Assembly (NCBI GenBank): GCA_904063045.1
Contig: CAJFCJ010000006.1
Span: 4,790,408-4,854,407, forward strand
Source of the DNA: Dimorphilus gyrociliatus
Taxonomy: Eukaryota > Animalia > Annelida
Reading direction: 5' to 3'
DNA: 64,000 nt
Below the pieces are notes generated by a model, which was given only the letters and a program-made list of their open reading frames with translations, made no database searches and was not told the origin of the DNA. The translations under genes were made by a program, and so were the position numbers. Position 1 is the first letter of the stretch, and each line of letters begins with the position of its first letter. Shown here in pieces: positions 1 to 48,477 of the stretch.

Positions 1-1127
1 AAATCGACTAGTAATAACGTATAAAAGTAGGATTTTACATAACCGATTAACAGTTTATAAAGCGAATAGAGAAATTAGACGCCATATGTGAGGTACGTAA
101 ATGTGCTCGCTTAGTGTAAGAATTGTTTGCATCTACATAAAGGAATAATTGGACGGTCGGACGCCTTAAAATACCATTCGAAAATTCGTTAACAGAATGC
201 AAATCGGTACGCGGGTATGATTGTTAACGCTTCGAAGAAATTCGATCGATAAACAGGTTTTCTTTTGTTGTTATTGTTGTTTTCGGGGTGGGGGTGGGGA
301 GGAGTGAGAGTGAGACTGATTCGTTTTGCTTGGCCATTGGTCAAATGGCTAAAAATACCATCAATTCAAATCTGGCCCCGTTTTCCTAACCCTCTTCATG
401 ACGTCATTTGAATCGATACGCAGGTGTGGAGAGATTCTCCTTCCTTTCCAGCTATTTGCCTATCCGGTAAATAGATTTTTTAAAGAATTCGCCGATTTTG
501 ACCTCATTTTTTCGGGGGAGGGCGGCGTCTAAACGCATGATTGCGCGCCTTCTATGCGCACCTGTCCCTCCGCCCGCACCACGTGCTTCTAGGAACACAA
601 AGCTGCCCCGCTACACACAAAGACGCCAGACGCCAACGACGCTTCGTATTTAGTTGGGATTCTTACTTTCGTCCCATTTTTTATCTATGTAAATTTTTGA
701 GATACCAAACATTTTTTGGTTTCAATACCTAAAAGCAACAGGCCCTAGATTTTTATTGGATAGTTTGCCGCCAAAGAGGAAGTAAAGCAAAAGTATGTAT
801 GGAAAGAATGTTGTTGTTTACGCGCTGTACTGCCGCCATTACTGTTGTTGGGGGAAGTTAGGATTTTATAGCCCCCGCCTATTTTTTACCGTTTTTTCTC
901 GTTTTCAAGTGCTTATCAAGTGAAGTGTATTGTAAACTATTGGCCTGCTTGTATACAACACTTTCACTTTTAGCAATTGCCTAAATAGCTATACCGTTAT
1001 TAAAGCAACCCTTTTGTATTTTGTTTTTTAAATTCGATTTTCAAAGGTTACTCTGATTTATGACCCCATTTTATTATGGTTGTTAGTGTGACAAGCTACG
1101 TCTAATACAGCCAATATTGTCTTTCAG

Positions 1128-4100
1128 GGCTACCAAAGCTTTCCAGCAAGTTTTATACATCGACCCATCTTTTTCAAGGGCAAACGAAGTTCATATCAGA
1201 TTGGGATTAATTCTTAAATTGCAGTGTGATTTTGATACTGCTCTGAAGCATCTTCGATTAGCTCTAGCTGATACAGCTGAATGTTCATTGTCTAAGCACG
1301 AACTCAGATTTCATATAGCTCATACATACGAACTTCAAGGAAAGTGGAGAGCAGCTAGGGATTCATACGAGGCCGTCATTGCTGGTGGTAACGACGTTCC
1401 TCACAACGTCATCGCCAACGCATACCGGCAATTGGGTTGGATGTACCATTGTGTTGAGGCAATAGGTGATCGACAATCGAGAGACGAAACAGCTATAAAG
1501 TGTCTTCAAAACGCTATTAACTCGAACGGATCTTGTGGACAGAGTTGGTACCTACTAGGAAGGTGCTACTCCTCTGCCGGCAAGGTACATGATGCGTTCA
1601 TGTCCTACAGGCAATCAATCGATAAATCGGAGGCGTCGGCCGATACATGGTGCTCAATCGGCGTTCTCTATCAACAACAATCCCAGCCAATGGATGCTTT
1701 GCAAGCATATATATGTGCAGTGCAACTAGATAAAACTCACACGGCTGCTTGGGTTGATTTGGGAATACTTTACGAAAGTTGCCATCAACCAAGAGATGCT
1801 TTAACCTGTTACCTAAATGCTACTCAACATGGAAATGCTTCAGTTAATCCTAATTTACAGGCACGGATAAAATTACTTGAAACACAATTGTCCAAAGTGC
1901 CTCTGCACACCTTACATAGAAATAATAAACCATTACCGGGAATTGAGGAGGCCTGGTCACTACCAATACCAGCTGAACTAACATCTAGACAGGGAGCAGC
2001 CACACCATCTCGTTCAGCAAATTCCTCTGCGGATTTTGATGGATCTCCAGCAGCAAAACGGTTGAAGAAAGTCGGTACCATGATGAATGTAAGTAGTATT
2101 AATTAGAAGAAAATCAATTGTCTAAATTATTAATACGAAATCAACAACAGGACCTAGCTCTTCCAGTACCACCTCCGTTAAATCCTCAACAATTGCAGAT
2201 GCTCAATTGCTTACAGCAGCAAGATCCAGTAAATTATTATTCTCTTGGTTTTATTTTAATCTAAATAGCTCTTAACCTCTTTTAGAATACCATGACGCAA
2301 AACAATCGAATCGTTCTTCAAGACTTACAAGCTCAATACTTGGCCCACCAACAACATCAACAACAGCAGCAACAACAGCAGCAACAACAACAGCAACAAC
2401 CACCGCCATCTCAACCTCCGCAACAGCCTCAACAACCTCAACAACCGTTTGAACTACCACCACCTCAAACAACCCTTCCAAATTCGCACGCAACCATTGG
2501 ACCAAACTTTCCCAATAGTAATGCTAAAGAAGAACTACATAATTCAGTTAGTGATCAAGAAATTACAGATTTCCTCAGCAAACATGATATTACTACCTCC
2601 ATGGCTGAGGACCTCTTAGCTCACTTTACAAAAGGATCTTCTGATGGTGACAATACCAGTTCACCGGGACCTCCTGAATTGTCTAAAGTAACTGATGATT
2701 GGGCTGATAGTCTGGAACGAGTAACGGATAGTCCGCCTCCTCTTTTAACTCCTATAACGCCTTCCATAGGTATTCATATGCGAGCACAGGCAGTAATTGA
2801 TGCCTGTAAAAGTCTCGGTAGAACTGGTACCTTCTCAAATTCTCTACTGCCCGACGAAAGTCAACCTCCGTGTCCGCCCCCCAATCCTTTTCCTTCCTTA
2901 CCTCCCGAAAAACTTCATCCTCCAACACCTAGTATATATTTAGATAATAAAAAGGATGCATTCTCTCAAGAGTTGCAACAATTTTGTCTGTCTCAACATG
3001 TATGTATTATTCGGGGATTAGCCGGTGCTCTAAAACTGGATCTAGGTTTATTTTCAACAAAGAGCTTAGTGGAAGCTAATGCTGATCATCCAGTGGAAGT
3101 CCGCACACAGAGACAATTCGCACCAGATGAAAATAGAGATGGTTCAGGAAACAGAATTTGGCGTTGTGAAAGTTCTAGATCTCATACAAGTATTGCCAAA
3201 TATGCTCAATATCAAGCTTCATCGTTTCAAGAATCATTAAAGGAAGAGCAGGAAAGAAATAAAGGCGTTTTAAAGGAAGATGAACAACAGCTAAAGAAAA
3301 GGAAATACAAGCTCATTAAATTTGGCACTAATGTAGATTTGAGCGATGATAAAAAATGGGCTCCCCAATTACAAGAACTAACGAAATTACCATCTTTTGC
3401 TCGTGTTGTAGCGGGTAATAATATGTTGTCACATATCCATCATACGATACTTGGTATGAATTCTGTACAGTTATATATGAAAGTACCAGGTTCTAGAACT
3501 CCTGGACACCAGGAGAATAACAACTTTTGCTCCGTAAATGTAAATATTGGACCCGGAGACTGTGAATGGTTTGCAACACCTGAATGCTATTGGGGAGTTA
3601 TTCACAGGTTGTGTGAAAAGCATAACATCAACTATCTAACTGGATCATGGTGGCCTATTTTAGAAGAGCTGGAAGAAGCTAAAGTTCCAGTTTATAGATT
3701 TGTGCAGAAACCGGGTGATCTCGTGTGGGTAGGTTCAGGTGCCGTCCATTGGGTTCAGGCGATTGGCTGGTGCAACAATATTGCCTGGAATGTGGGACCT
3801 ATAACAGCTAAACAATATAGTCTGGCTGTTGAGCGCTATGAGTATAATAAACTGCAATCTTATAAAAGCATTGTGCCGATGATATATCTCTCATGGAACT
3901 TAGCAAGGAATATCAAAATGACAGATATTCGATTGTTTGAGCAAGTTAAATTTGTTCTATTACGGTCCTTGCGATTTACAGCTTTGATACTCGACTTCTT
4001 CGACGCAGTTGGCAAAACAGTCAATTATCAAGGAGTTGACAAAGGAGAACCAGCTCATTATTGCCATACATGCGAAGTTGAAGTCTTTAACATCCTCCTG

Positions 4101-4358
4101 GTGACAGAACACGAAAAGAAACAATGTCATGTTGTTTACTGCCTAGATTGCGCTAAACGTATCTCTCCTGATCTTTCAAATTTTGTTGCACTTCATCAAT
4201 ACCATATGAAAGAGCTTATCCAATGGTACGACGACTTTATTCTAGGAGCAGCGGTAAGTCACTGTTAATAGGATAATTCGAAAAAAAAAGAGTTCAAAAG
4301 GCATTCAAATATTTAATTTAATAATCAATTTTAGAACACTGCAGTAACAACTGCCTGA
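1128..4358 (+). CDS. KDM6A: Histone H3K27 demethylase UTX/KDM6A (5'-partial; TPR repeats, polyQ, JmjC, C-terminal Zn-binding domain)
   Basis: Exons 1128-2088, 2151-2228, 2286-4253, 4335-4358. TPR region [27 protein letters not shown]; JmjC Fe ligands [11 protein letters not shown] and VHWVQA; CHTC/CLDC zinc knuckle. The first acceptor is phase 2 and no upstream UTX-like exon was seen in 1-1127. Confidence 0.95.
2347..2400 (+). repeat. CAA/CAG polyglutamine tract in KDM6A
   Basis: Mixed CAA/CAG run encoding [17 protein letters not shown]. Confidence 0.9.
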
Positions 4359-5149
4359 ATGATAAATGTAATGGCAGGGACCAACGGCTTATCAATAGTG
4401 AAAAAAAACGGACAGTTTATCAATTTTTCCATGGATAACAAGAGTCGCTTTGTCAAGTCATATGTATATGTTGAAAATATAACGGTTCGTAGCGAATTAT
4501 ATTTGTTTTAGTAAATGATTGAACTTAGATTTATTAATTGTAGTACATTCCTGCCTTTTTTTCACAGTTTGTTGTCACGATTTATGTCTTGTGTTGTAAT
4601 TATAAGCGTTTAAATACAATAATATTCCTCGTTTATTACAAAAACTATTTAAAAGTAGTAGTTTCTTCTTATATTCATATCAGTAAGAATTATTAAAAGG
4701 AATAAAATCCCAATCACTTGATCAATCCATATCTGAAAAGTTTTAGATTTTGCATTTAATAATCCAATTATTTCTGAATGGAATAAAGGGTAAATCTTTA
4801 TAAATAAGGAATGTTTTGTAAAGGAGAATAACTACAAATTGCCAATATTTTTTCGAGACAATAATCCCAAAAAAACAACCATTTTTATTGGTTTCTGTTT
4901 AGTTTTTAATATTTCTTCTTTCTATTCCTTTGCTAACAACTATACGGTTATCTACAGAAAAAACAAAACCAGAATAAACTAGGTAGTCATGTATTTATTG
5001 CTTATGAAATACAATATAAATTTCACATAGTATCTTTTATTAGCCATTTATTCAAGATAAAACATTATGCTTCATTGTTATAAACACTTATTAAGCCTCT
5101 GTCTGATTAGTTGCATAGATAAATATTATGAGGAGCTACAAACTCAAAT

Positions 5150-7482
5150 CTACCAGGTTCTCTTCTTCAACAGTTCTTTATTTATGATTCGTTTTAAGAG
5201 ATCATCAACAGAATCTTCTTCGGTACTGGCTTCGCAAGAATCTTCGACTCTTTCCACTGATAAAAATTCATACTCAAACTTTAGAAAAAGCATATATGAT
5301 TGATTTAATCAATTACCTGTCTTTGACAATTTAATTTGAAATTCGACTGCATTGTAGAATTCAGCATTTTTTACTGAAGCACAATTTTCTCCTTTGAATG
5401 ACTCTATTTTAGTTTTCATACAATCGAAATAATCTTGACCATTTTTATGTCCGCTTGGACCGCTTGGTCCACTTGGTCCGCTTGGACCGCTTGGTCCACT
5501 TGGTCCACTTGGTCCACTTGGTTTACCGTGTCTTCTCTTACCAGTTGGTCCATGTTTTCCTTTACCAGTTGGTCCATGTTTTCCTTTACCAGTTGGTCCA
5601 TGTTTTCCTTTACCAGTTGGTCCATGTTTTCCTTTACCAGTTGGTCCATGCTTTCCTTTACCAGTTGGTTTCAGCTCGCCGTCTATTGTTCTAAGAAGCT
5701 GCTTCAGTTGTTCTCTAAATGAATTTTTTTGTATTTATAATCTAAGAAAAAGGCACCCCACTTCTTACAATTTTTTTTCATTGTCAGAAGGTCCTGATGG
5801 TCCTGAAGGTCCTGATGGTCCCGAAGGTCCTGATGGTCCTGAAGGTCCTGATGGTCCCGAAGGTCCTGATGGTCCTGAAGGTCCTGATGGTCCAGAAGGT
5901 CCAGTTGGACCATGTGGTTTATCGGCATCTTTTATTGCTCTAAGAAGTGTTCTGAGTTTGTTTCTAAAATTAAAGGCTTTGTATAAATAGTGTAACATAA
6001 AGGAAACGTTATTCTTACAATTTAGTTCCATGATGTCCAGGTCCCGAAGGTCCCGAAGGTCCCGAAGGTCCCGAAGGTCCCGAAGGTCCCGAAGGTCCCG
6101 AAGGTCCTGACGGTCCAGAAGGTCCAGAGGGTCCAGAAGGTCCAGAAGGTCCAGTTGGACCATGTGGTTTATCGGCATCTTCTATTGCTCTAAGAAGTGT
6201 TCTGAGTTTGTTTCTAAAATTAAAGGCTTTGTATAAATAGTGTAACATAAAGGAAACGTTATTCTTACAATTTAGTTCCATGATGTCCAGGTCCAGATGG
6301 TCCTGATGGTCCAGAGGGTCCAGAAGGTCCAGAGGGTCCAGAAGGTCCAGAAGGTCCAGAAGGTCCAGAGGGTCCAGAAGGTCCAGAAGGTCCAGAAGGT
6401 CCAGTAGGTTTGTTAGGATCTCCTGCACCAGATCGAAGCTTTCGTAGAAGGTTCTCTAATCTATTTCTGAAATGTAAGCATGTGATAACATATATATTAT
6501 TGCAGCTGGCGATAAATAGCTCACTCATATGAATTTTCTGCAATTGTCTTTCTAATGAGATTTCTCAAAGCCGGACTGAAATTATAATTTAAATTAAAGC
6601 TTATGAGTCTTTAAATACAATAAGCAAATCCTTACAGAGATCTCTTTTTGCGATCTAGTCCTTCAACATCATCTATTTCTGCTTCCTCATCATTTGAAGA
6701 TTCACATTTTCTCGAGAAATCAAAAACTGGACAATCTTCAACAACAGCATGAATTAAACGACCAAACAAATTAGCAAACTTATCGGAAAGGAAAGCCGTC
6801 TCTTCCGGTAAACATCCTTTGAGCGAAACTTTGTTATCAATGATATTTTTACGGCAATCAATTGTTTGTCGACCATATTTTCTGCAAGGTATTAATAAGA
6901 CAATAGATAAATTAGTCAGGAAAGAGAGATGCTAAAAAATTATCACTTAAGACGTTCCGAATCGCCTCGGAAGTGGTGGAGAGCAACAATAAAATAATGA
7001 GTTTGGATTGCACATTGAGTAACTGATTCGACTTCACATCCTTTACTTTCATCAGATCTTCGTTGTACACAAACGTTGCTAAGAGATTCTAAATCATTTG
7101 CTGCGTATACAATCTTCTTTATTAAGTATTCAGGACATTCGCAAAACTTTTTCTCTGCCAAACCGTCTTGCAAGCATTTCTGAGCTGTTGAGGCTTTTTG
7201 CTTACAGATATCATTATCTTCTTCAGCTAACATCTCATCTGTACATTGGAAAAGAGCATCGCAAGATTCTTCGCAATTTCTTCCGAAACGTTTTGGTGGG
7301 CATATACATTTATAACCGAAATGAGAGTGTTCAAGACCGCATTCTTTGGTATCGCAACAAGTTCCGCCGTTCTGGCATGGATTATGAACTTCGCAAGTTC
7401 CCGTAGAGGTAAACTCTCGAAGGGAAAATCTCGAAGCTGACGTTAGACTTATCAAGCAGAGAAGAGCCACAAACGACTTCAT
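5150..7482 (-). CDS. Secreted EGF + Cys-rich + furin site + (Gly-Pro-Ser)n collagen-like repeat protein, 641 aa, 8 exons
   Basis: Exons 7482-6947, 6881-6636, 6575-6525, 6466-6269, 6213-6019, 5963-5769, 5714-5317, 5256-5150. All junctions are GT-AG with matching phases; total 1926 nt, open to TAG. Signal peptide [16 protein letters not shown]; [16 protein letters not shown]...[14 protein letters not shown]; DRKKR/SL site. Confidence 0.85.
5530..5665 (-). repeat. 24-bp tandem repeat encoding (PTGKGKHG)x5 plus PTGKRRHG
   Basis: Unit ttttcctttaccagttggtccatg is repeated on the + strand. Confidence 0.95.
5769..6466 (-). repeat. Tandem ~250-bp exon+intron units, each with a 9-bp GPS microrepeat
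   Basis: Introns 6214-6268 and 5964-6018 are identical 55-mers. Exons of 198, 195 and 195 nt carry 12, 12 and 13 GPS triplets. Confidence 0.95.
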
Positions 7483-8121
7483 AATAGCGATTGCCTAGCA
7501 CCAAGACGGGCCTTCAGTTTATATAGCATTGTTAAGGAGCTTAGCCACCCATTTATTCTGAGTCACCTGCTTTAACAGATTTGCTTACAGCTATGGGAAA
7601 TATTACTAGATAACAATCAATATATTTTTAACGGACGTAGACATTTTTCTCCATAACCAGTTTCATTATCTTTCGAAAGACAAAAATCTTCCTTATCATT
7701 AAATTCAAATTATTGCAATATTAAGATATCTAAACTAAATATAACCTAAATTTTATTATTACTTATTAAATGTTGTCATAAAGCATCTAATCTGTAGTTT
7801 GCCCTTCAAATAATAACTTGCCCTTAAAGGATTTATTTCAAAGACTATGTTTTTTATTTTGAGTGGGAACGTCTACAGAATGTAAATGATTATTGCTTAG
7901 AATATATTGTCCTGTTTAAGTTCGGTAAATCTATTATTTCTAAAATTAAAACATAGAACTTACTGTCTAGGGGTTAGTGTTTCTGTATATATATATATAT
8001 ATATAGATGTCTAGTGCATGCAAATACTATCTATTTGCAAGATCTTATTACTAACCAGTCACGTTGTCTTGATTGAAAAATATACCTTGATATAATTTGA
8101 ATATTGAATTAGAAATATAAT

Positions 8122-8608: not shown

Positions 8609-10352
8609 TTAGGTCGAAGCCCAATGGGAGATTGTGTGAGCTCTTAAACTTGGCATGGGATGATCGGCTCTTAAATCTGGTATGTTTTTTAAGACTCGTC
8701 GTCTAAGATCTCTTAAATAATCGTTTTCGGCTTTGTCCTTGAAAGTAACACCTCGATCGACTGCAATAACTTTAGAAAGAACATTCTTCCCAGGCATTGG
8801 GCCACTTTGTTTGCTAAAGTCTCGCAACATTGGCTGACTTAATTTCATTGAAGTCTTGAGGCGCGAGGTGGCGCCCTGCAATCGGGGGGAAAGAGAACAA
8901 AGACGACTGTCAATCCGAGAGTTTCTTTCACCAGCCGCTTCCTGTAGTTTATAACCAAGATATCTTAATAGGGGCACATGATGATCGAGGGCAGGCCGAG
9001 AATAACGTCGGCGTATCTGAAGTGAAAGTATGCATTGAAGATGTTTAAGTGTGCCTGGATTCCTCCGCACTAAAAGTCTATCATAATGACCTCTTTCTAG
9101 AGTTAATAAAGTTAATGGTTGCATTGCAATAACAGTTGAATGATGAAAAGGCAAATCCAAAGCCATTTCTTCTCCACCAATTGATTGTCCAACGCCAACA
9201 TAGCATACATTAACTCTACTACCACTAGCCTTTAAGAGTACAGCTTCCTGTTGCGGAAGCATCATGTGGCTATTATGACGATTTATTGTCTTTTGAACTC
9301 TTGTACATTTCCACAAAGAAGGAGACATTCTAGTTAATTTCACCAAAGCGTCTCTTTCCTCCCTGTCTTTACTGTCATTTAACATAAGGGGTTGGCATTT
9401 ACGTATGAACTCTCCAAATTGCTTCTTATGAGCTTCTGGGTCCATTTGTACAACTGCTTCCCCATTTGTTATAAAGAAAATTTCATTTACAGCGTCTCCC
9501 TGCCTAACTATAACTTCATTGTATCCGATCTATATTATTCAAAATAGAGCAAATATTAAGGAAAAACAATTTTTCTAATTAATTTTATTAAACTTATAAA
9601 GAAAGAGAAGATTTCTCTTATTTTTTTACATCAGGCCTACAAATAACAAATATTACATTAAATATTTTAACAGGTATACAAAAAAATAAGAATTGCTTCT
9701 TATTTGTAGTAATAAAGCTAATATTATTTTTAAGGGCCTAATCTTCTTCTTGTTTTATCCAATTAGTCGTTATATAATCGGAATTTTGTGATATATTCAT
9801 TACGACATTTGTGCTGTTCGATAGAACATCAGAGCTAGTGACATCTGTTGACACGTTCAATGAAATCTGTGGTATTAAATTTTCCTCCTCCCTTTTTATG
9901 TCTATTATTTCGGTAGTAAAACAATTTGGCAGTGGTGAACTATTCGCTGACACACTACGAGTAGAAATTACAGTGTTTAAATCAGTTTGAACTGAAACAT
10001 TAGCAGTAGACTTTTCCCTCTTGTGGTCATTTTGTAAAACATTCTTTCTCGAACGTCTTCTTCTCAAAGCATAAGGTATTCTTGAACGCTTCTGATATAA
10101 TTCCGAACACTTTAAATTCTTTAAATAAACCTTTCCATTGGAGAATTCTCTAAACGACTTTAGAATATCCTTTTCCGTAAAATCCTCGGGGAATATAATT
10201 TTCATTTTTTTTAACACGTGTATACACACTGTATAATTTGTAATTGTATTTTAATCGTATTATCGTACTTTTGAGTTAAAAAGTTTTCTTAAGGATATTT
10301 TATATGTAAACATATATATATACAGTATATATAATATATATATATATATATG

Positions 10353-10411
<59 letters not shown>

Positions 10412-11604
10412 TAATATATATAGATAAAAAGGTAAATATGTATATATGTAGGATGTCTGTGTGTATGGGTATATATATAAATATGGATTTATATGGACAT
10501 GTATGGATACACAAGTGTTATGTGGCTTATACGTATTATAGGCCTATTGTTTAAAACTACTCAATCAAGATTAAAGTATGTAGACGAGCTCAACTTGACA
10601 AAAATATGAATTAGCCTTGTACGAAACTCTTAAAATTGAATAAAAGTCGAAATGAATGTAAATAGGGAATTGTGTGTTTTTGTAGGTATTTTACTTATTT
10701 AATTAATAAAATACATACCTGTATTCTATTTACTGAAGCAGCAAGATGTTTTTTCCATTTTGTTGGCCAATTTCTAAATAGTTCATGATTTTCAACAAAA
10801 GATAATTTTTCTTGGTATTCTTGACTGATTATTTTCCCCACAGAGCGATTATATAAGTCTTTGTGTATGACTATAACTGAAGTTATTGTATCAGCTACAA
10901 TAGACGCCGTTCTTACACAGTCATCATTTATTAAGGCTAATTCTCCAAAACTTTGTCCTTCCTCTACAAGTGCCAATTAAAAGAGCTTATATCGATTCTT
11001 AAAACTTAATAGTAAGGACTTACTGAATGTTGTTACCGTATTACCGATTTTCGATCTATCAATAACAATGTTACAAGTTGGTCCGGGATTAATAGCGGTT
11101 GAGAAATCGATTAAAGCTGAATCGTCTCCTAAATCTTTAATTACAACCGAAACGCTCCCTCTCAGTATAATGTAGAACCTTTTTTTTATTGTTGTAATAA
11201 TAATAGAGATAATCCAATTTAAAACAAAAATCATACGATATTAAAGATAAAAAAGCCGTAAGTATAGACCCTTTTACGATAAATGAATTATTCAATTTAT
11301 ATATTCTCTCTTTTGTTAAATAGTAACTTTATAAGATAAAAAAGAGAGATAAATAAATAAAGAAGAAAACAATATGTACTTACGAATCTCCCTTCTCTTG
11401 TTGGCCAATAATTAGTCCATTTTTTGGATATTCTTTATAATGACAATGCTTCAGTAGGTCAATTAAACTATCCAATTTTAATTTTTCAAATAATTTCGAA
11501 CGTTTTTGGAACCAGGCGCTGAATTTTTCCAATTCTTTTGGCAGTCTACCCTTCGGTGGTTGTGAGAGGACGTTAACAACTTGGTCGAAAGTTACCTGAC
11601 TCAT
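8609..11604 (-). CDS. Cyclic nucleotide-binding domain protein (CNBD2-like, two cNMP-binding domains)
   Basis: Spliced reading gives [19 protein letters not shown] ... [24 protein letters not shown] (phosphate-binding cassette), then a second domain [25 protein letters not shown] after a ~1.2 kb intron. Confidence 0.8.
9738..10205 (-). CDS. Intronless 155-aa orphan ORF nested in the large intron of the CNBD gene
   Basis: ATG at 10205 (MKIIFPEDF...), open for 468 nt in very AT-rich DNA; basic RRRRSRK patch and Ser/Thr/Asn-rich tail; no family recognised. Confidence 0.45.
   Translation of the reverse strand: MKIIFPEDFTEKDILKSFREFSNGKVYLKNLKCSELYQKRSRIPYALRRRRSRKNVLQNDHKREKSTANVSVQTDLNTVISTRSVSANSSPLPNCFTTEIIDIKREEENLIPQISLNVSTDVTSSDVLSNSTNVVMNISQNSDYITTNWIKQEED
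10312..10410. repeat. (TA)n microsatellite
   Basis: About 100 bp of nearly pure TA in the CNBD intron. Confidence 0.95.
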
Positions 11605-11834: not shown

Positions 11835-12086
11835 TCATACGGTGCTGTTTCGATCTCTTTATTTCAATGATCAAAAATACCGCAATACTCAGGCCGGCAA
11901 TTTGAAAAAGAATCAATCCGAGCGTTAATAATCCTATAATTCGTTTGTAATATTTTATAGCTTGAGTGAGATTTGATGAACAGCCGCTGGCGAAGACTGT
12001 CCTGCTCGCTATCGTGATCTGTATAATAGACGATAAAGAGGAGGAAAAAGTTTAGATTTAGGGTTCAATGCTATACTGTATATATA

Positions 12087-12149
<63 letters not shown>

Positions 12150-12954
12150 TGTATACTGTATATATTCGATGAATAGGAGGAATGAATTATAATACTAAGA
12201 AAGGTTATTGGAAGGTGAAAAAGGACGTACAGATTTTTCGAGCACGTTCGCTCCGCAACGTCGATTTGATGACAACCGTTTACAACACGAAGCTGGAACG
12301 GCACATTTATCAATGGATGGGTTATCAACGTGACATTTATAATAGATATTATCATTCCAGTCTTTTGGTCCGTGTATACCGCAACACTTAAAAGTTGATT
12401 GTACCCAGTCAACTAAATCTTTCAGATCATCATCTTCTCTGTAGCGTTGTATTGTCTCTGATCCTATATAATCTTCGACCAATCGTCTAATAAAATTACC
12501 CCTTATTAAAAGGGATATGAATACCACGCATTGAAAAAACAACAGAAAAGTAACGATTATTGCGAATATTCTTAAAAGATTGACATTCAACCGTAATGAT
12601 CCTATACATCCAATAAAAGATATACAGATAACTAGAAAACTGATTAGGATAAGTAAGAAAGATATATCAAATAATTCCGTCTTTATATCCCAGAAATCCG
12701 GTTTGTAAATTGACTTAAGCCTGTAAGCCCATATACCAATCGAAAGTGTCAAACAAGAGAACACCTAAAATATACAAACAGAATAATATTACATAATACC
12801 AATTTGCCTTTTCCAATAGGATAAAAAATATCGTTAACAAAGGACTCATTCCACTTACTAATATCAGGAAATTAATCGTATAAAAAAAGTACTTTAAACA
12901 TCGATTAACTCCTGATTTCCTGTTTCTATCGCAATTCGATTTCTCATTATCCAT
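11835..12954 (-). CDS. Tetraspanin of TspanC8 type (Tspan5/14/17/33-like)
   Basis: Three exons; four hydrophobic segments; large loop with CCG, PASCC and 8 Cys; terminal exon ITIASRTVFASGC...IRDRNSTV* reconstructed after the TA-rich intron. Confidence 0.85.
12079..12148. repeat. (TA)n microsatellite
   Basis: TA run in the last tetraspanin intron. Confidence 0.95.

Positions 12955-21457: not shown

Positions 21458-21498
<41 letters not shown>
21458..21498. repeat. (TA)n microsatellite next to GA/GGGA repeats
   Basis: Pure TA run between the convergent HERC4 and DLG1 3' ends. Confidence 0.9.
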
Positions 21499-46464: not shown

Positions 46465-48477
46465 ATCATATTATTTCTATTTATTCTGAGGTGAAGAAAA
46501 CAAAGTTTAAGTTACTAGTAATAACATACAATAGGATTTTTTTGTACATAAACTTTTTTCTCTATAAGATGTTCTCTCCATTCAACCTAGATTTTGGAAT
46601 GTATATATATATATATATATAAAACCTGTATAATATACAATATATACTAATATAAATTTATATATATATACATATATATATTTTAAATGGATTATTTATA
46701 TAACGATTTTTCAAAAAAATACATACTGTATATACTGTATATATTTATATACAGTATATATGCAAATATATGTTATTTTCACATTTGATACACCATATAA
46801 TATCTTTATTATACTACCTAGTAATATAGAAATTTACTCTGCGCTGTCCTAGTGCAGAATGAACAAGGCGCTAGGTCTTATCAGTATTGACCCTATGCTA
46901 TATTTATCGTAAAACGTCATTTTAGCAACCAGAATGACTAGTCTGATCAGCTATGTAAACAGAAACCTGATATACTGGACTCAACTATTCAAGGGTATAC
47001 AAGGGAAAAAGAATATATGTATTAGTATATATATATTTATTCATATGGGCGTAATCTTTTTCACAAGAGAGCATTTTGTAGAAAAGAAATCTTTAGCAAG
47101 CGTTTTATAGGATAGGCTGTTCCACGTATGAATCATTCTATAATAAACGTTGTATAGGATTAGTGAATTCAATGAAAAATACTTTTTCGACAAACAATTT
47201 ATGCAACAACTTTCAGACTGGCCTTTTGTTATTATATTAAAATGTGCAAGTTTTAATATATTATTAACAAATACTCTAGCTGAATCAATAATACCTAATA
47301 AGTTATTGTGGATATTTTGACATTTCGAAATCTTTTTACGTCTTTAACTTTTTGCTATATTTCTTTAGGTAACATACTTAGACTCTTGTCTAAAATTTTT
47401 GTGTAATTTTATGATACCATTAGTTGCCTGAATTTGGAAGCGCCTTCAAAGTTTCTCTGGTTTTTTATTATACATACTCTACGTCTCTGACTTATAGGAA
47501 GGTGTTGAGCACATTGATGATCGATTCAATATTCCATCTATAATGCAGATCTAAGTGCAGTGCAAAAAACTTTGAATTATTTGCTGATGAAGAACATTAT
47601 ACTTCTAACTCCTTTTGATTGTTTTATCTTCGATTCAAAGTGTTCGATTATTTATCAGTCTAAGTTCATCTTATAAAATCAAATCTTCCAGCTGTTTGGT
47701 TCTACTGAGACAAAAGGCCTATTCTTTGTTGCTTATTCATAGTTTATAGGGCAGTTTCATTTGGCAATTCGTCAATAACATTAATAATAGGCATGTTTTC
47801 TTTTTTTAATCTTATATAACTTCTGCGGACCTTGTCTTATTTCTGAGCATTTGTTTTTGTATTTTAGCAACAACATTTCCCTAATGTTGTCTGCAAGATG
47901 AGAATGTTTCTTTGCAGTTATATCTCCGTGCTTTTCATCAATTTCCCCTCTCGTTGCAAATCTTTATTTAATTAACATATGTACTTTGCAAGGAAATGTT
48001 GAAAACAAGATAGCGTTATTTACTATCTCAATAGTTATGGATTTCCTGAAAATTGGCCTATCCTACATAAATTTTTATATTAAACAGTCCACACACGTGA
48101 AATACTGTACCAATATACATATAGTGTATATATGCATATACAAATATATATATATATATATATATACTGTATATATGTATATACAATAAAGAGTTTATTA
48201 AACTTAATTCAACATATGTCGAAACAACCGATTAACCAAAAAACTAATATAAAAAGAAACTACAAATTTTCAACAAAAATAATCAAAATTAACAACCTTT
48301 TATGATTATTATCATAAATACAGGGTGATATCATTTTTTTTAAAAAATGATTAAAATGTCAGACTATAAAAAGAAATTATTTCTTATTTTAGAGCATTAA
48401 ATTGATTTATAACTATATCCATTTGTATGTACAGAGAAGGGAGAGGAAAGAAAGAATGTATATTAGATATGAAGAGC

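Follow-up and report, generated by a model that had tools for sequence, protein, structure and literature searches.

What kind of protein is encoded by a gene whose predicted product joins an EGF-like domain to repeated runs of Gly-Pro-Ser, and are those runs collagen? The question is raised by a locus in a 64,000-nucleotide stretch of Dimorphilus gyrociliatus DNA (contig CAJFCJ010000006.1), the whole of which we call the window and to which all positions refer unless another contig is named. At 5150-7482 of the window, on the minus strand, we find a single gene. Our conclusion from sequence analysis is that this gene is lineage-restricted and fast-evolving, and that it encodes a predicted secreted pro-protein. 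As to what that protein does, we favour, at a probability of roughly 0.45, a basic structural or secretion protein, rich in Gly, Pro and Ser and processed by a convertase, in which the runs would be extended spacers, and the short helices between them, together with the tail, would be points of association. The architecture appears to be new within a known kind of protein; the gene is real and two species have kept it, while the function is a prediction only.

The gene and its orthologue

Six-frame translation combined with explicit splice modelling joins eight exons into one frame of 641 codons, ending at a TAG stop. This reproduces exactly the 641-residue frame and the order of domains given in the earlier note, a first description made from the letters of the window, which was also right that a bacterial-style list of open reading frames (ORFs) displays the gene only as fragments (exon 1 appears there as an ORF of 179 residues). 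All seven introns are of the GT...AG type and 54-65 nucleotides long, with a GC content of 22-34% against 43% for the coding sequence, and most of them contain stops in every frame. At the acceptor of exon 8, the frame is kept only by the junction TTTTTATCAG/TG.

A HMMER search with exon 1, exhaustive over 1.84 billion cluster representatives (∼15 billion proteins), returned a single full-length relative, P0001 (182 residues, E 2.8e-26); the remaining matches cover residues 22-104 only, and mostly the EGF part at 22-77. P0001 comes from a second species, where it is the ORF of exon 1 on four Logan genomic contigs, and it is 37% identical to the exon 1 described here. All cysteines of the head, by which we mean the part of the protein up to its convertase motif RKKR, align between the two species except Cys9 of the signal peptide, the first EGF cysteine being shifted by one residue. 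In our model of the second gene, exon 1 is exactly 536 nucleotides and exon 3 exactly 51 nucleotides, every junction is in phase 2, and the 51-nucleotide exon, in the same phase as here, encodes FKTLLKRAHEKL. An RRKR motif lies at the place aligned with RKKR, behind an acidic stretch and unique in its protein, and an amphipathic KLRELL-type helix opens every module exon of the body that follows. The polarity is as here, an acidic head and a basic body.

Because their upstream neighbours, a 90% identical gene and a tetraspanin gene, stand in the same order and orientation, we regard the two genes as orthologous. The first of these neighbours is an ORF at 8609-9445, which corresponds at 90% protein identity to L001:3904-4803 of the second species. 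Synonymous sites are saturated between the two species, the proportion of synonymous differences (pS) being 0.62-0.75, with 0.67 for the 8609-9445 neighbour. The non-synonymous divergence (dN) is 0.60 for exon 1 and 0.066 for the same neighbour, a rate of change about nine times faster that would be typical of secreted, lineage-specific products. Since synonymous sites are saturated and the gene is otherwise fast-changing, its conserved framework has outlasted a long divergence. A search of proteins for further orthologues, using a profile of the two species, returned P0001 only.

As judged by this comparison, the gene is real and not a product of chance, because the syntenic orthologue keeps its exon sizes and phases, its head cysteines, its R-x-K-R motif and its module-opening helices, and because a 641-codon frame with seven canonical introns stands here in DNA that is 66% A+T. 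For transcription there is weak evidence from a k-mer search, in which two RNA-type sequencing runs held 21% and 9% of the sampled 31-mers of the locus and one unclassified run held 62%.

Head, cleavage motif and body

Exon 1 (6947-7482, 536 nucleotides, residues 1-178; minus strand, as are all elements of the gene given below) encodes a signal peptide (residues 1-17; 7432-7482), an EGF-like domain (residues 28-74; 7261-7401) and the onset of an orphan Cys-rich, helical region. Residues 22-73 matched the EGF domains of EDIL3 and factor VII in a PDB profile search (E 2.4e-5 to 5e-3) and many multi-EGF proteins in the HMMER search, and an ESM Atlas feature search with the whole of exon 1 led to EGF clusters at 0.84. 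The Pfam EGF score for the exon is sub-threshold, at 10.8 bits, and the domain carries two extra cysteines inside a long loop. At the level of sequence profiles, we take the EGF-like identity of residues 22-73 to be confirmed.

Residues 75-240 hold 12 further cysteines beyond the EGF-like domain. The remainder of this region, with four cysteines, is encoded in the splice model by exon 2 (6636-6881, residues 179-260), which continues into an acidic spacer and RKKR. There is no Pfam match to residues 75-240, and no relative in the protein collection searched except the orthologue; the ESM Atlas feature search with residues 72-178 likewise found no match. An AlphaFold2 model of exon 1, built from a two-sequence alignment, places helices at residues 68-140 with a predicted local distance difference test score (pLDDT) of 64-88 locally and 53 overall. 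Fold searches with this model (Foldseek against the PDB, ESM Atlas by shape, VIA-align in wide mode) found generic helical bundles only, the best scores being E 1.2, TM 0.35 and Z 4.4. The earlier note had known no family of this architecture and had proposed HMMER and Foldseek searches of the Cys-rich region. Run with exon 1, these gave no family or fold match beyond EGF, and the statement holds: HMMER yields one orthologue and EGF-only matches, and the Pfam, PDB profile and three fold searches are empty beyond the EGF-like domain.

The head is acidic (isoelectric point (pI) 5.4, net charge -9) and has 21 cysteines; the body has three, so that the number is odd in each part. Between them lies RKKR (residues 256-259; 6641-6652 in exon 2), followed by SLPALR and preceded by an acidic stretch, and this is the sole R-x-[KR]-R motif in the protein. 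The body after it comprises 382 residues with a pI of 9.9, a net charge of +22 and 13 histidines, about half of it being Gly, Pro and Ser. The logic of a secretory pro-protein with a furin site, as set out in the earlier note, is upheld by the comparison of the two sequences, given that both the R-x-K-R motif after an acidic stretch and the opposition of acidic head and basic body are kept in the orthologue.

The first amphipathic helix of the body is encoded by exon 3 (6525-6575, 51 nucleotides, phase 2-2), immediately past the predicted cleavage site. Three module exons follow, all in phase 2-2. Exon 4 (6269-6466, 198 nucleotides, module 1) encodes the helix RLENLLRKL and 13 unbroken G-X-Y triplets with a His-His end, while exon 5 (6019-6213, module 2) and exon 6 (5769-5963, module 3), of 195 nucleotides each, encode the helix KLRTLLRAI and 14 G-X-Y triplets. 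The module period is thus 65-66 residues, three times over, and consists of a 24-residue helix linker and a 42-residue G-X-Y slot that is equal in exons 4-6 and without Gly interruption. Exon 7 (5317-5714, module 4 and tail) encodes the helix QLKQLLRTI, an octapeptide array (5538-5669), a run of eight triplets with AGY serine codons (5449-5522, from the codon table) and a tail with two cysteines. Tandem Repeats Finder describes the array as 5.5 copies of a 24-nucleotide unit at 99% identity, and it is out of G-X-Y register. Exon 8 (5150-5256, residues 607-641 and TAG) adds an acidic stretch with the third tail cysteine and then the helix DDLLKRII.

The earlier note had described four modules, each a helix followed by 8-13 GPS triplets. 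The helices that open exons 4-7 and the one in exon 8 are as it reported, though exon 3 holds a helix of the same type which it did not count. The triplet numbers need correction: the unbroken G-X-Y runs of exons 4-7 are 13, 14, 14 and 8 triplets long and contain 12, 12, 13 and 7 GPS units, and module 4 is mostly the out-of-register octapeptide array. All three body cysteines lie within the last 70 residues, spaced by 13 and 29 residues. In the spliced translation there is no cysteine between modules, nor is there a dibasic site, the only other basic clusters being KRR in module 4 and KKR near the C-terminus.

Spacers or collagen rods

How might such a protein work? On the reading we favour, the head would fold in the endoplasmic reticulum, where it would mask or solubilise the basic body, and late in the secretory route a furin-type convertase would cut past RKKR. 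Once free, the body would associate with itself in the extracellular space by way of its helices, repeated five or six times, and of the odd-numbered cysteines in its tail. Between these points the hydrophilic Gly-Pro-Ser runs would serve as extended spacers of polyproline-II or elastomer-like type, which may carry O-glycans or hydroxyl groups. A hydrated matrix or secretion would result, for example a surface coat, mucus, cocoon or adhesive. In its Gly+Pro content the protein lies far beyond the range known for elastomeric, disordered proteins.

The earlier note had instead taken the helices to nucleate trimers of collagen rods, and this part of its proposal does not fare well. Each helix has about 1.3 heptads of an a/d/e hydrophobic pattern, a single a-d-e-a turn, which is too short for a stand-alone coiled coil. 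In the orthologue, the Gly register is broken, with Lys in Gly positions (GLS-KPS) and a GPS-GQG-KPS 9-mer, and one module exon (L002:5282-5374) encodes a long basic helix only (∼31 residues), with no Gly/Pro/Ser run; from this helix-only module it follows that helix and run can be separately gained or lost. If we set the protein against what defines the collagen superfamily, the runs are long enough, and conservation of the Gly register does not extend to the orthologue. The runs of the present gene do appear to satisfy the sequence requirements for short collagen helices, but we doubt that a triple helix is a conserved, essential property, because the register is broken in the orthologue and because the octapeptide array has expanded recently out of register.

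Several observations weigh against the spacer reading. One is the constraint on the runs themselves. Codon differences among the three runs of exons 4-6 are 14-20 synonymous and only 1-2 non-synonymous, and the same GPS peptide is encoded by two serine codon families: the exon 7 run (5449-5522) uses AGC/AGT, with CCA for proline, while the runs of exons 4-6 (5787-6409) use TCN, each with its own codon dialect and higher-order unit. Since the differences are nearly all synonymous, the dialects separate and two codon families spell one peptide, the run peptide is under selection. A constraint of this kind would exceed the needs of a spacer and would fit either a triple helix or a strict modification motif. 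In addition, the orthologue is readable only up to its third module, its contigs ending in repeat; cleavage at RKKR is a prediction from the motif; and two RNA-type runs hold only the 21% and 9% of 31-mers noted above.

The sequences also record how the modules have changed. Exons 5 and 6 are identical at 51 of 52 nucleotides in their helix parts, and introns 4 and 5, which flank exon 5, at 55 of 55. The runs of the two exons agree at only 105 of 126 nucleotides, with 18 synonymous codon differences and one non-synonymous. Because identical introns and near-identical helix parts contrast with diverged runs, this mosaic indicates, as far as the sequences go, a recent cassette duplication or conversion together with faster, length-preserving turnover inside the runs. 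The locus is a clean example of exon cassettes being duplicated while the coding microsatellite within them turns over without change of length. In the orthologue, the last module mixes AGT and TCN serine codons.

The alternative that survives best is a true interrupted mini-collagen, in which the helices, the three-cysteine tail or both would nucleate trimers after the convertase cut, and each run of 13-14 triplets would form a rod of ∼12 nm stabilised by X-position hydroxyproline, O-glycosylated Ser or both. We consider this possible, though on the unlikely side. The four uninterrupted runs speak for it, as do the strict retention of G, P and S in the protein and the equal run lengths despite separate codon dialects, and an odd number of tail cysteines suits knots between chains. 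The Pfam Collagen model (PF01391) scores 24.7 bits with the module 1 exon alone, below its cut-off of 27.2, and 9.9 bits with exon 7 alone. Precedents exist: cnidarian minicollagens have rods of 12-16 triplets (PMC11766948), earthworm cuticle collagen is especially rich in X-position 4-hydroxyproline (PMC8233474), and (Gly-Pro-Thr)10 becomes triple-helical on glycosylation, being a random coil when unglycosylated (PMC11923368). By analogy, a Ser version of the unmodified triplet rod would probably need modification too. Annelid-type chemistry, that is, X-position 4-hydroxyproline (PMC8233474, PMC12403961) or glycosylated Thr (PMC11923368), could rescue a helix.

Against a mini-collagen stand, besides the shortness of the helices, the out-of-register array of exon 7, the orthologue's broken register with its run-less module and the random coil of unglycosylated (Gly-Pro-Thr)10, two further points. 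Pro in X followed by Ser is, to our knowledge, not the X-Pro-Gly substrate of the classical collagen prolyl 4-hydroxylase, and no recognised trimerisation domain emerged from the Pfam searches with the exons or the PDB profile search with the head. We therefore rank spacers between association helices slightly above a true mini-collagen, and regard both as live.

Two particular geometries for a triple helix may be considered here. An intramolecular one formed from modules 1-3 was rejected, given our estimate that the 24-residue linker spans at most ∼8.6 nm and so cannot return along a 12-nm rod. In the other, the equal module period would have been selected for assembly staggered by one module, such that run 1, run 2 and run 3 of different chains wind together; we rate this a long shot. 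If it were true, removal of the head would trigger growth of an endless, sticky-ended network of collagen helices, and the protein would be nature's equivalent of the collagen-mimetic peptides that have been designed to self-assemble.

A precursor of bioactive products is an improbable alternative to our preferred structural or secretion protein. Here the anionic head would neutralise a cationic body, in the manner of the precursors of host-defence peptides, or the EGF head would itself be a ligand with the repeats as its carrier or stalk. The charges on the two sides of RKKR (-9 against +22, with 13 His), the same polarity in the orthologue, the amphipathic cationic helices, the conserved convertase motif, the fast evolution of the gene and the head being its best conserved part would all be compatible with this. 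However, no dibasic sites stand between the modules to free peptides, a body of 382 residues that is half Gly/Pro/Ser is unlike known peptide precursors, and Pfam finds no BRICHOS or other known pro-domain. The weakest alternative, that this is not a working gene as modelled but a locus that is decaying or mis-spliced and in which repeats of microsatellite-like DNA are expanding, is very improbable: the protein of this species is absent from the 15-billion-protein collection and the arrays arose very recently (units 99% identical, introns identical), yet 641 codons remain open across seven canonical introns, the exon plan, phases, cysteine framework and cleavage motif are kept despite saturated synonymous sites, variation within runs is almost purely synonymous, and part of the locus is present in two RNA-type runs.

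Known systems and the genomic neighbourhood

The protein's mode of action would, by analogy, come closest to that of extracellular assembly proteins that are activated by furin and carry short collagen- or elastomer-like repeats. Cnidarian minicollagens are likewise secreted, lose a pro-part at a basic site, and combine short G-X-Y stretches (12-16 triplets against the 13-14 here; PMC11766948) with cysteine links. The present protein differs from them in having no polyproline flanks or six-cysteine Cys-rich domains, its tail holding only three cysteines, and in carrying four tandem modules per chain where they have one rod, a helix before each run, and an EGF and helical Cys-rich head; Pfam and HMMER searches found no sequence similarity between the two. 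With nematode cuticle collagens it shares short interrupted G-X-Y blocks, adjoining cysteines and an N-terminal R-x-x-R cut by a furin-type convertase (PMC11766948). Its head is different, its runs are pure Gly-Pro-Ser and its genome is of lophotrochozoan type; neither Col_cuticle_N nor the homology boxes were found, and Pfam on exons 1-2 gave only the weak EGF match.

Annelid cuticle collagen resembles the runs in having Pro in X and a hydroxy-amino acid in Y, which fits the chemistry of X-position hydroxyproline and glycosylated Thr/Ser (PMC8233474, PMC11923368, PMC12403961). Unlike the 8-14 triplets split by helices here, it forms a very long triple helix of high mass (PMC11766948). In tropoelastin and resilin, flexible Gly/Pro stretches alternate with short Lys/Arg helices on in-phase cassette exons, the number of copies changes fast and the protein is basic, all as here. 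There is no sequence relationship with them, however: the present runs are hydrophilic and strictly triplet-periodic, the Cys-rich head is cleavable, and lysyl-oxidase-type KA/KP or Tyr cross-link motifs are lacking. The preCols of mussel byssus share His flanking collagen-like runs (HG...GHHG) and the character of a basic, secreted gland product, but their collagen domain is single and long, with silk- or elastin-like parts on either side, and they have no EGF head or repeated helices, and Pfam and HMMER searches found no similarity to them. Where tested, the defining features of each of these families were absent from the present sequence, which appears to be homologous to none of them beyond the EGF domain. 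Searching the literature for the repeat string turned up unrelated proteins only.

If this is a material protein, its design would be a compact one, a cleavable head and then repeated cassettes of a helix and (Gly-Pro-Ser)n. From it one might learn how short segments of collagen-like or polyproline-II type are arranged where long triple helices are lacking, and what use is made of X-position proline and Ser/Thr chemistry of the annelid kind. On present evidence, it is one among many lineage-specific secreted repeat proteins.

Upstream of the gene, on the minus strand, other ORFs within 8609-11604 resemble, by eye, a cyclic-nucleotide-binding domain, and a tetraspanin-like gene with a CCG motif lies further upstream (12195-12954, minus strand). 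In the second species, a gene matching Pfam Tetraspanin is found at L001:467-1054, with side and orientation matching those in the window, so that local gene order is conserved. On the other side, a KDM6A/UTX histone demethylase gene converges on the repeat-protein gene, with its 3' part at 1117-4268 (plus strand), including a TPR exon and a JmjC exon. Among its best matches, at 46-65% identity, are proteins of molluscs, annelids, insects and vertebrates, none in the collection being near-identical. A second-species contig holding the orthologue's tail was sought by way of KDM6A, using queries of 658 and 199 residues, and no match exceeded ∼65% over most of the query.

Pattern scans of the sequence flanking the coding region find a TATA-like box at 7520-7525 (minus strand), beginning 43 nucleotides upstream of the ATG, as a putative promoter, and two putative AATAAA polyadenylation-type signals at 5036-5052 (minus strand), 97 and 108 nucleotides past the stop. 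Long (TA)n microsatellites occur in the window at 10301-10447, 12079-12165, 21458-21498, 46602-46681 and 48113-48183, some of them in introns of the neighbouring genes.

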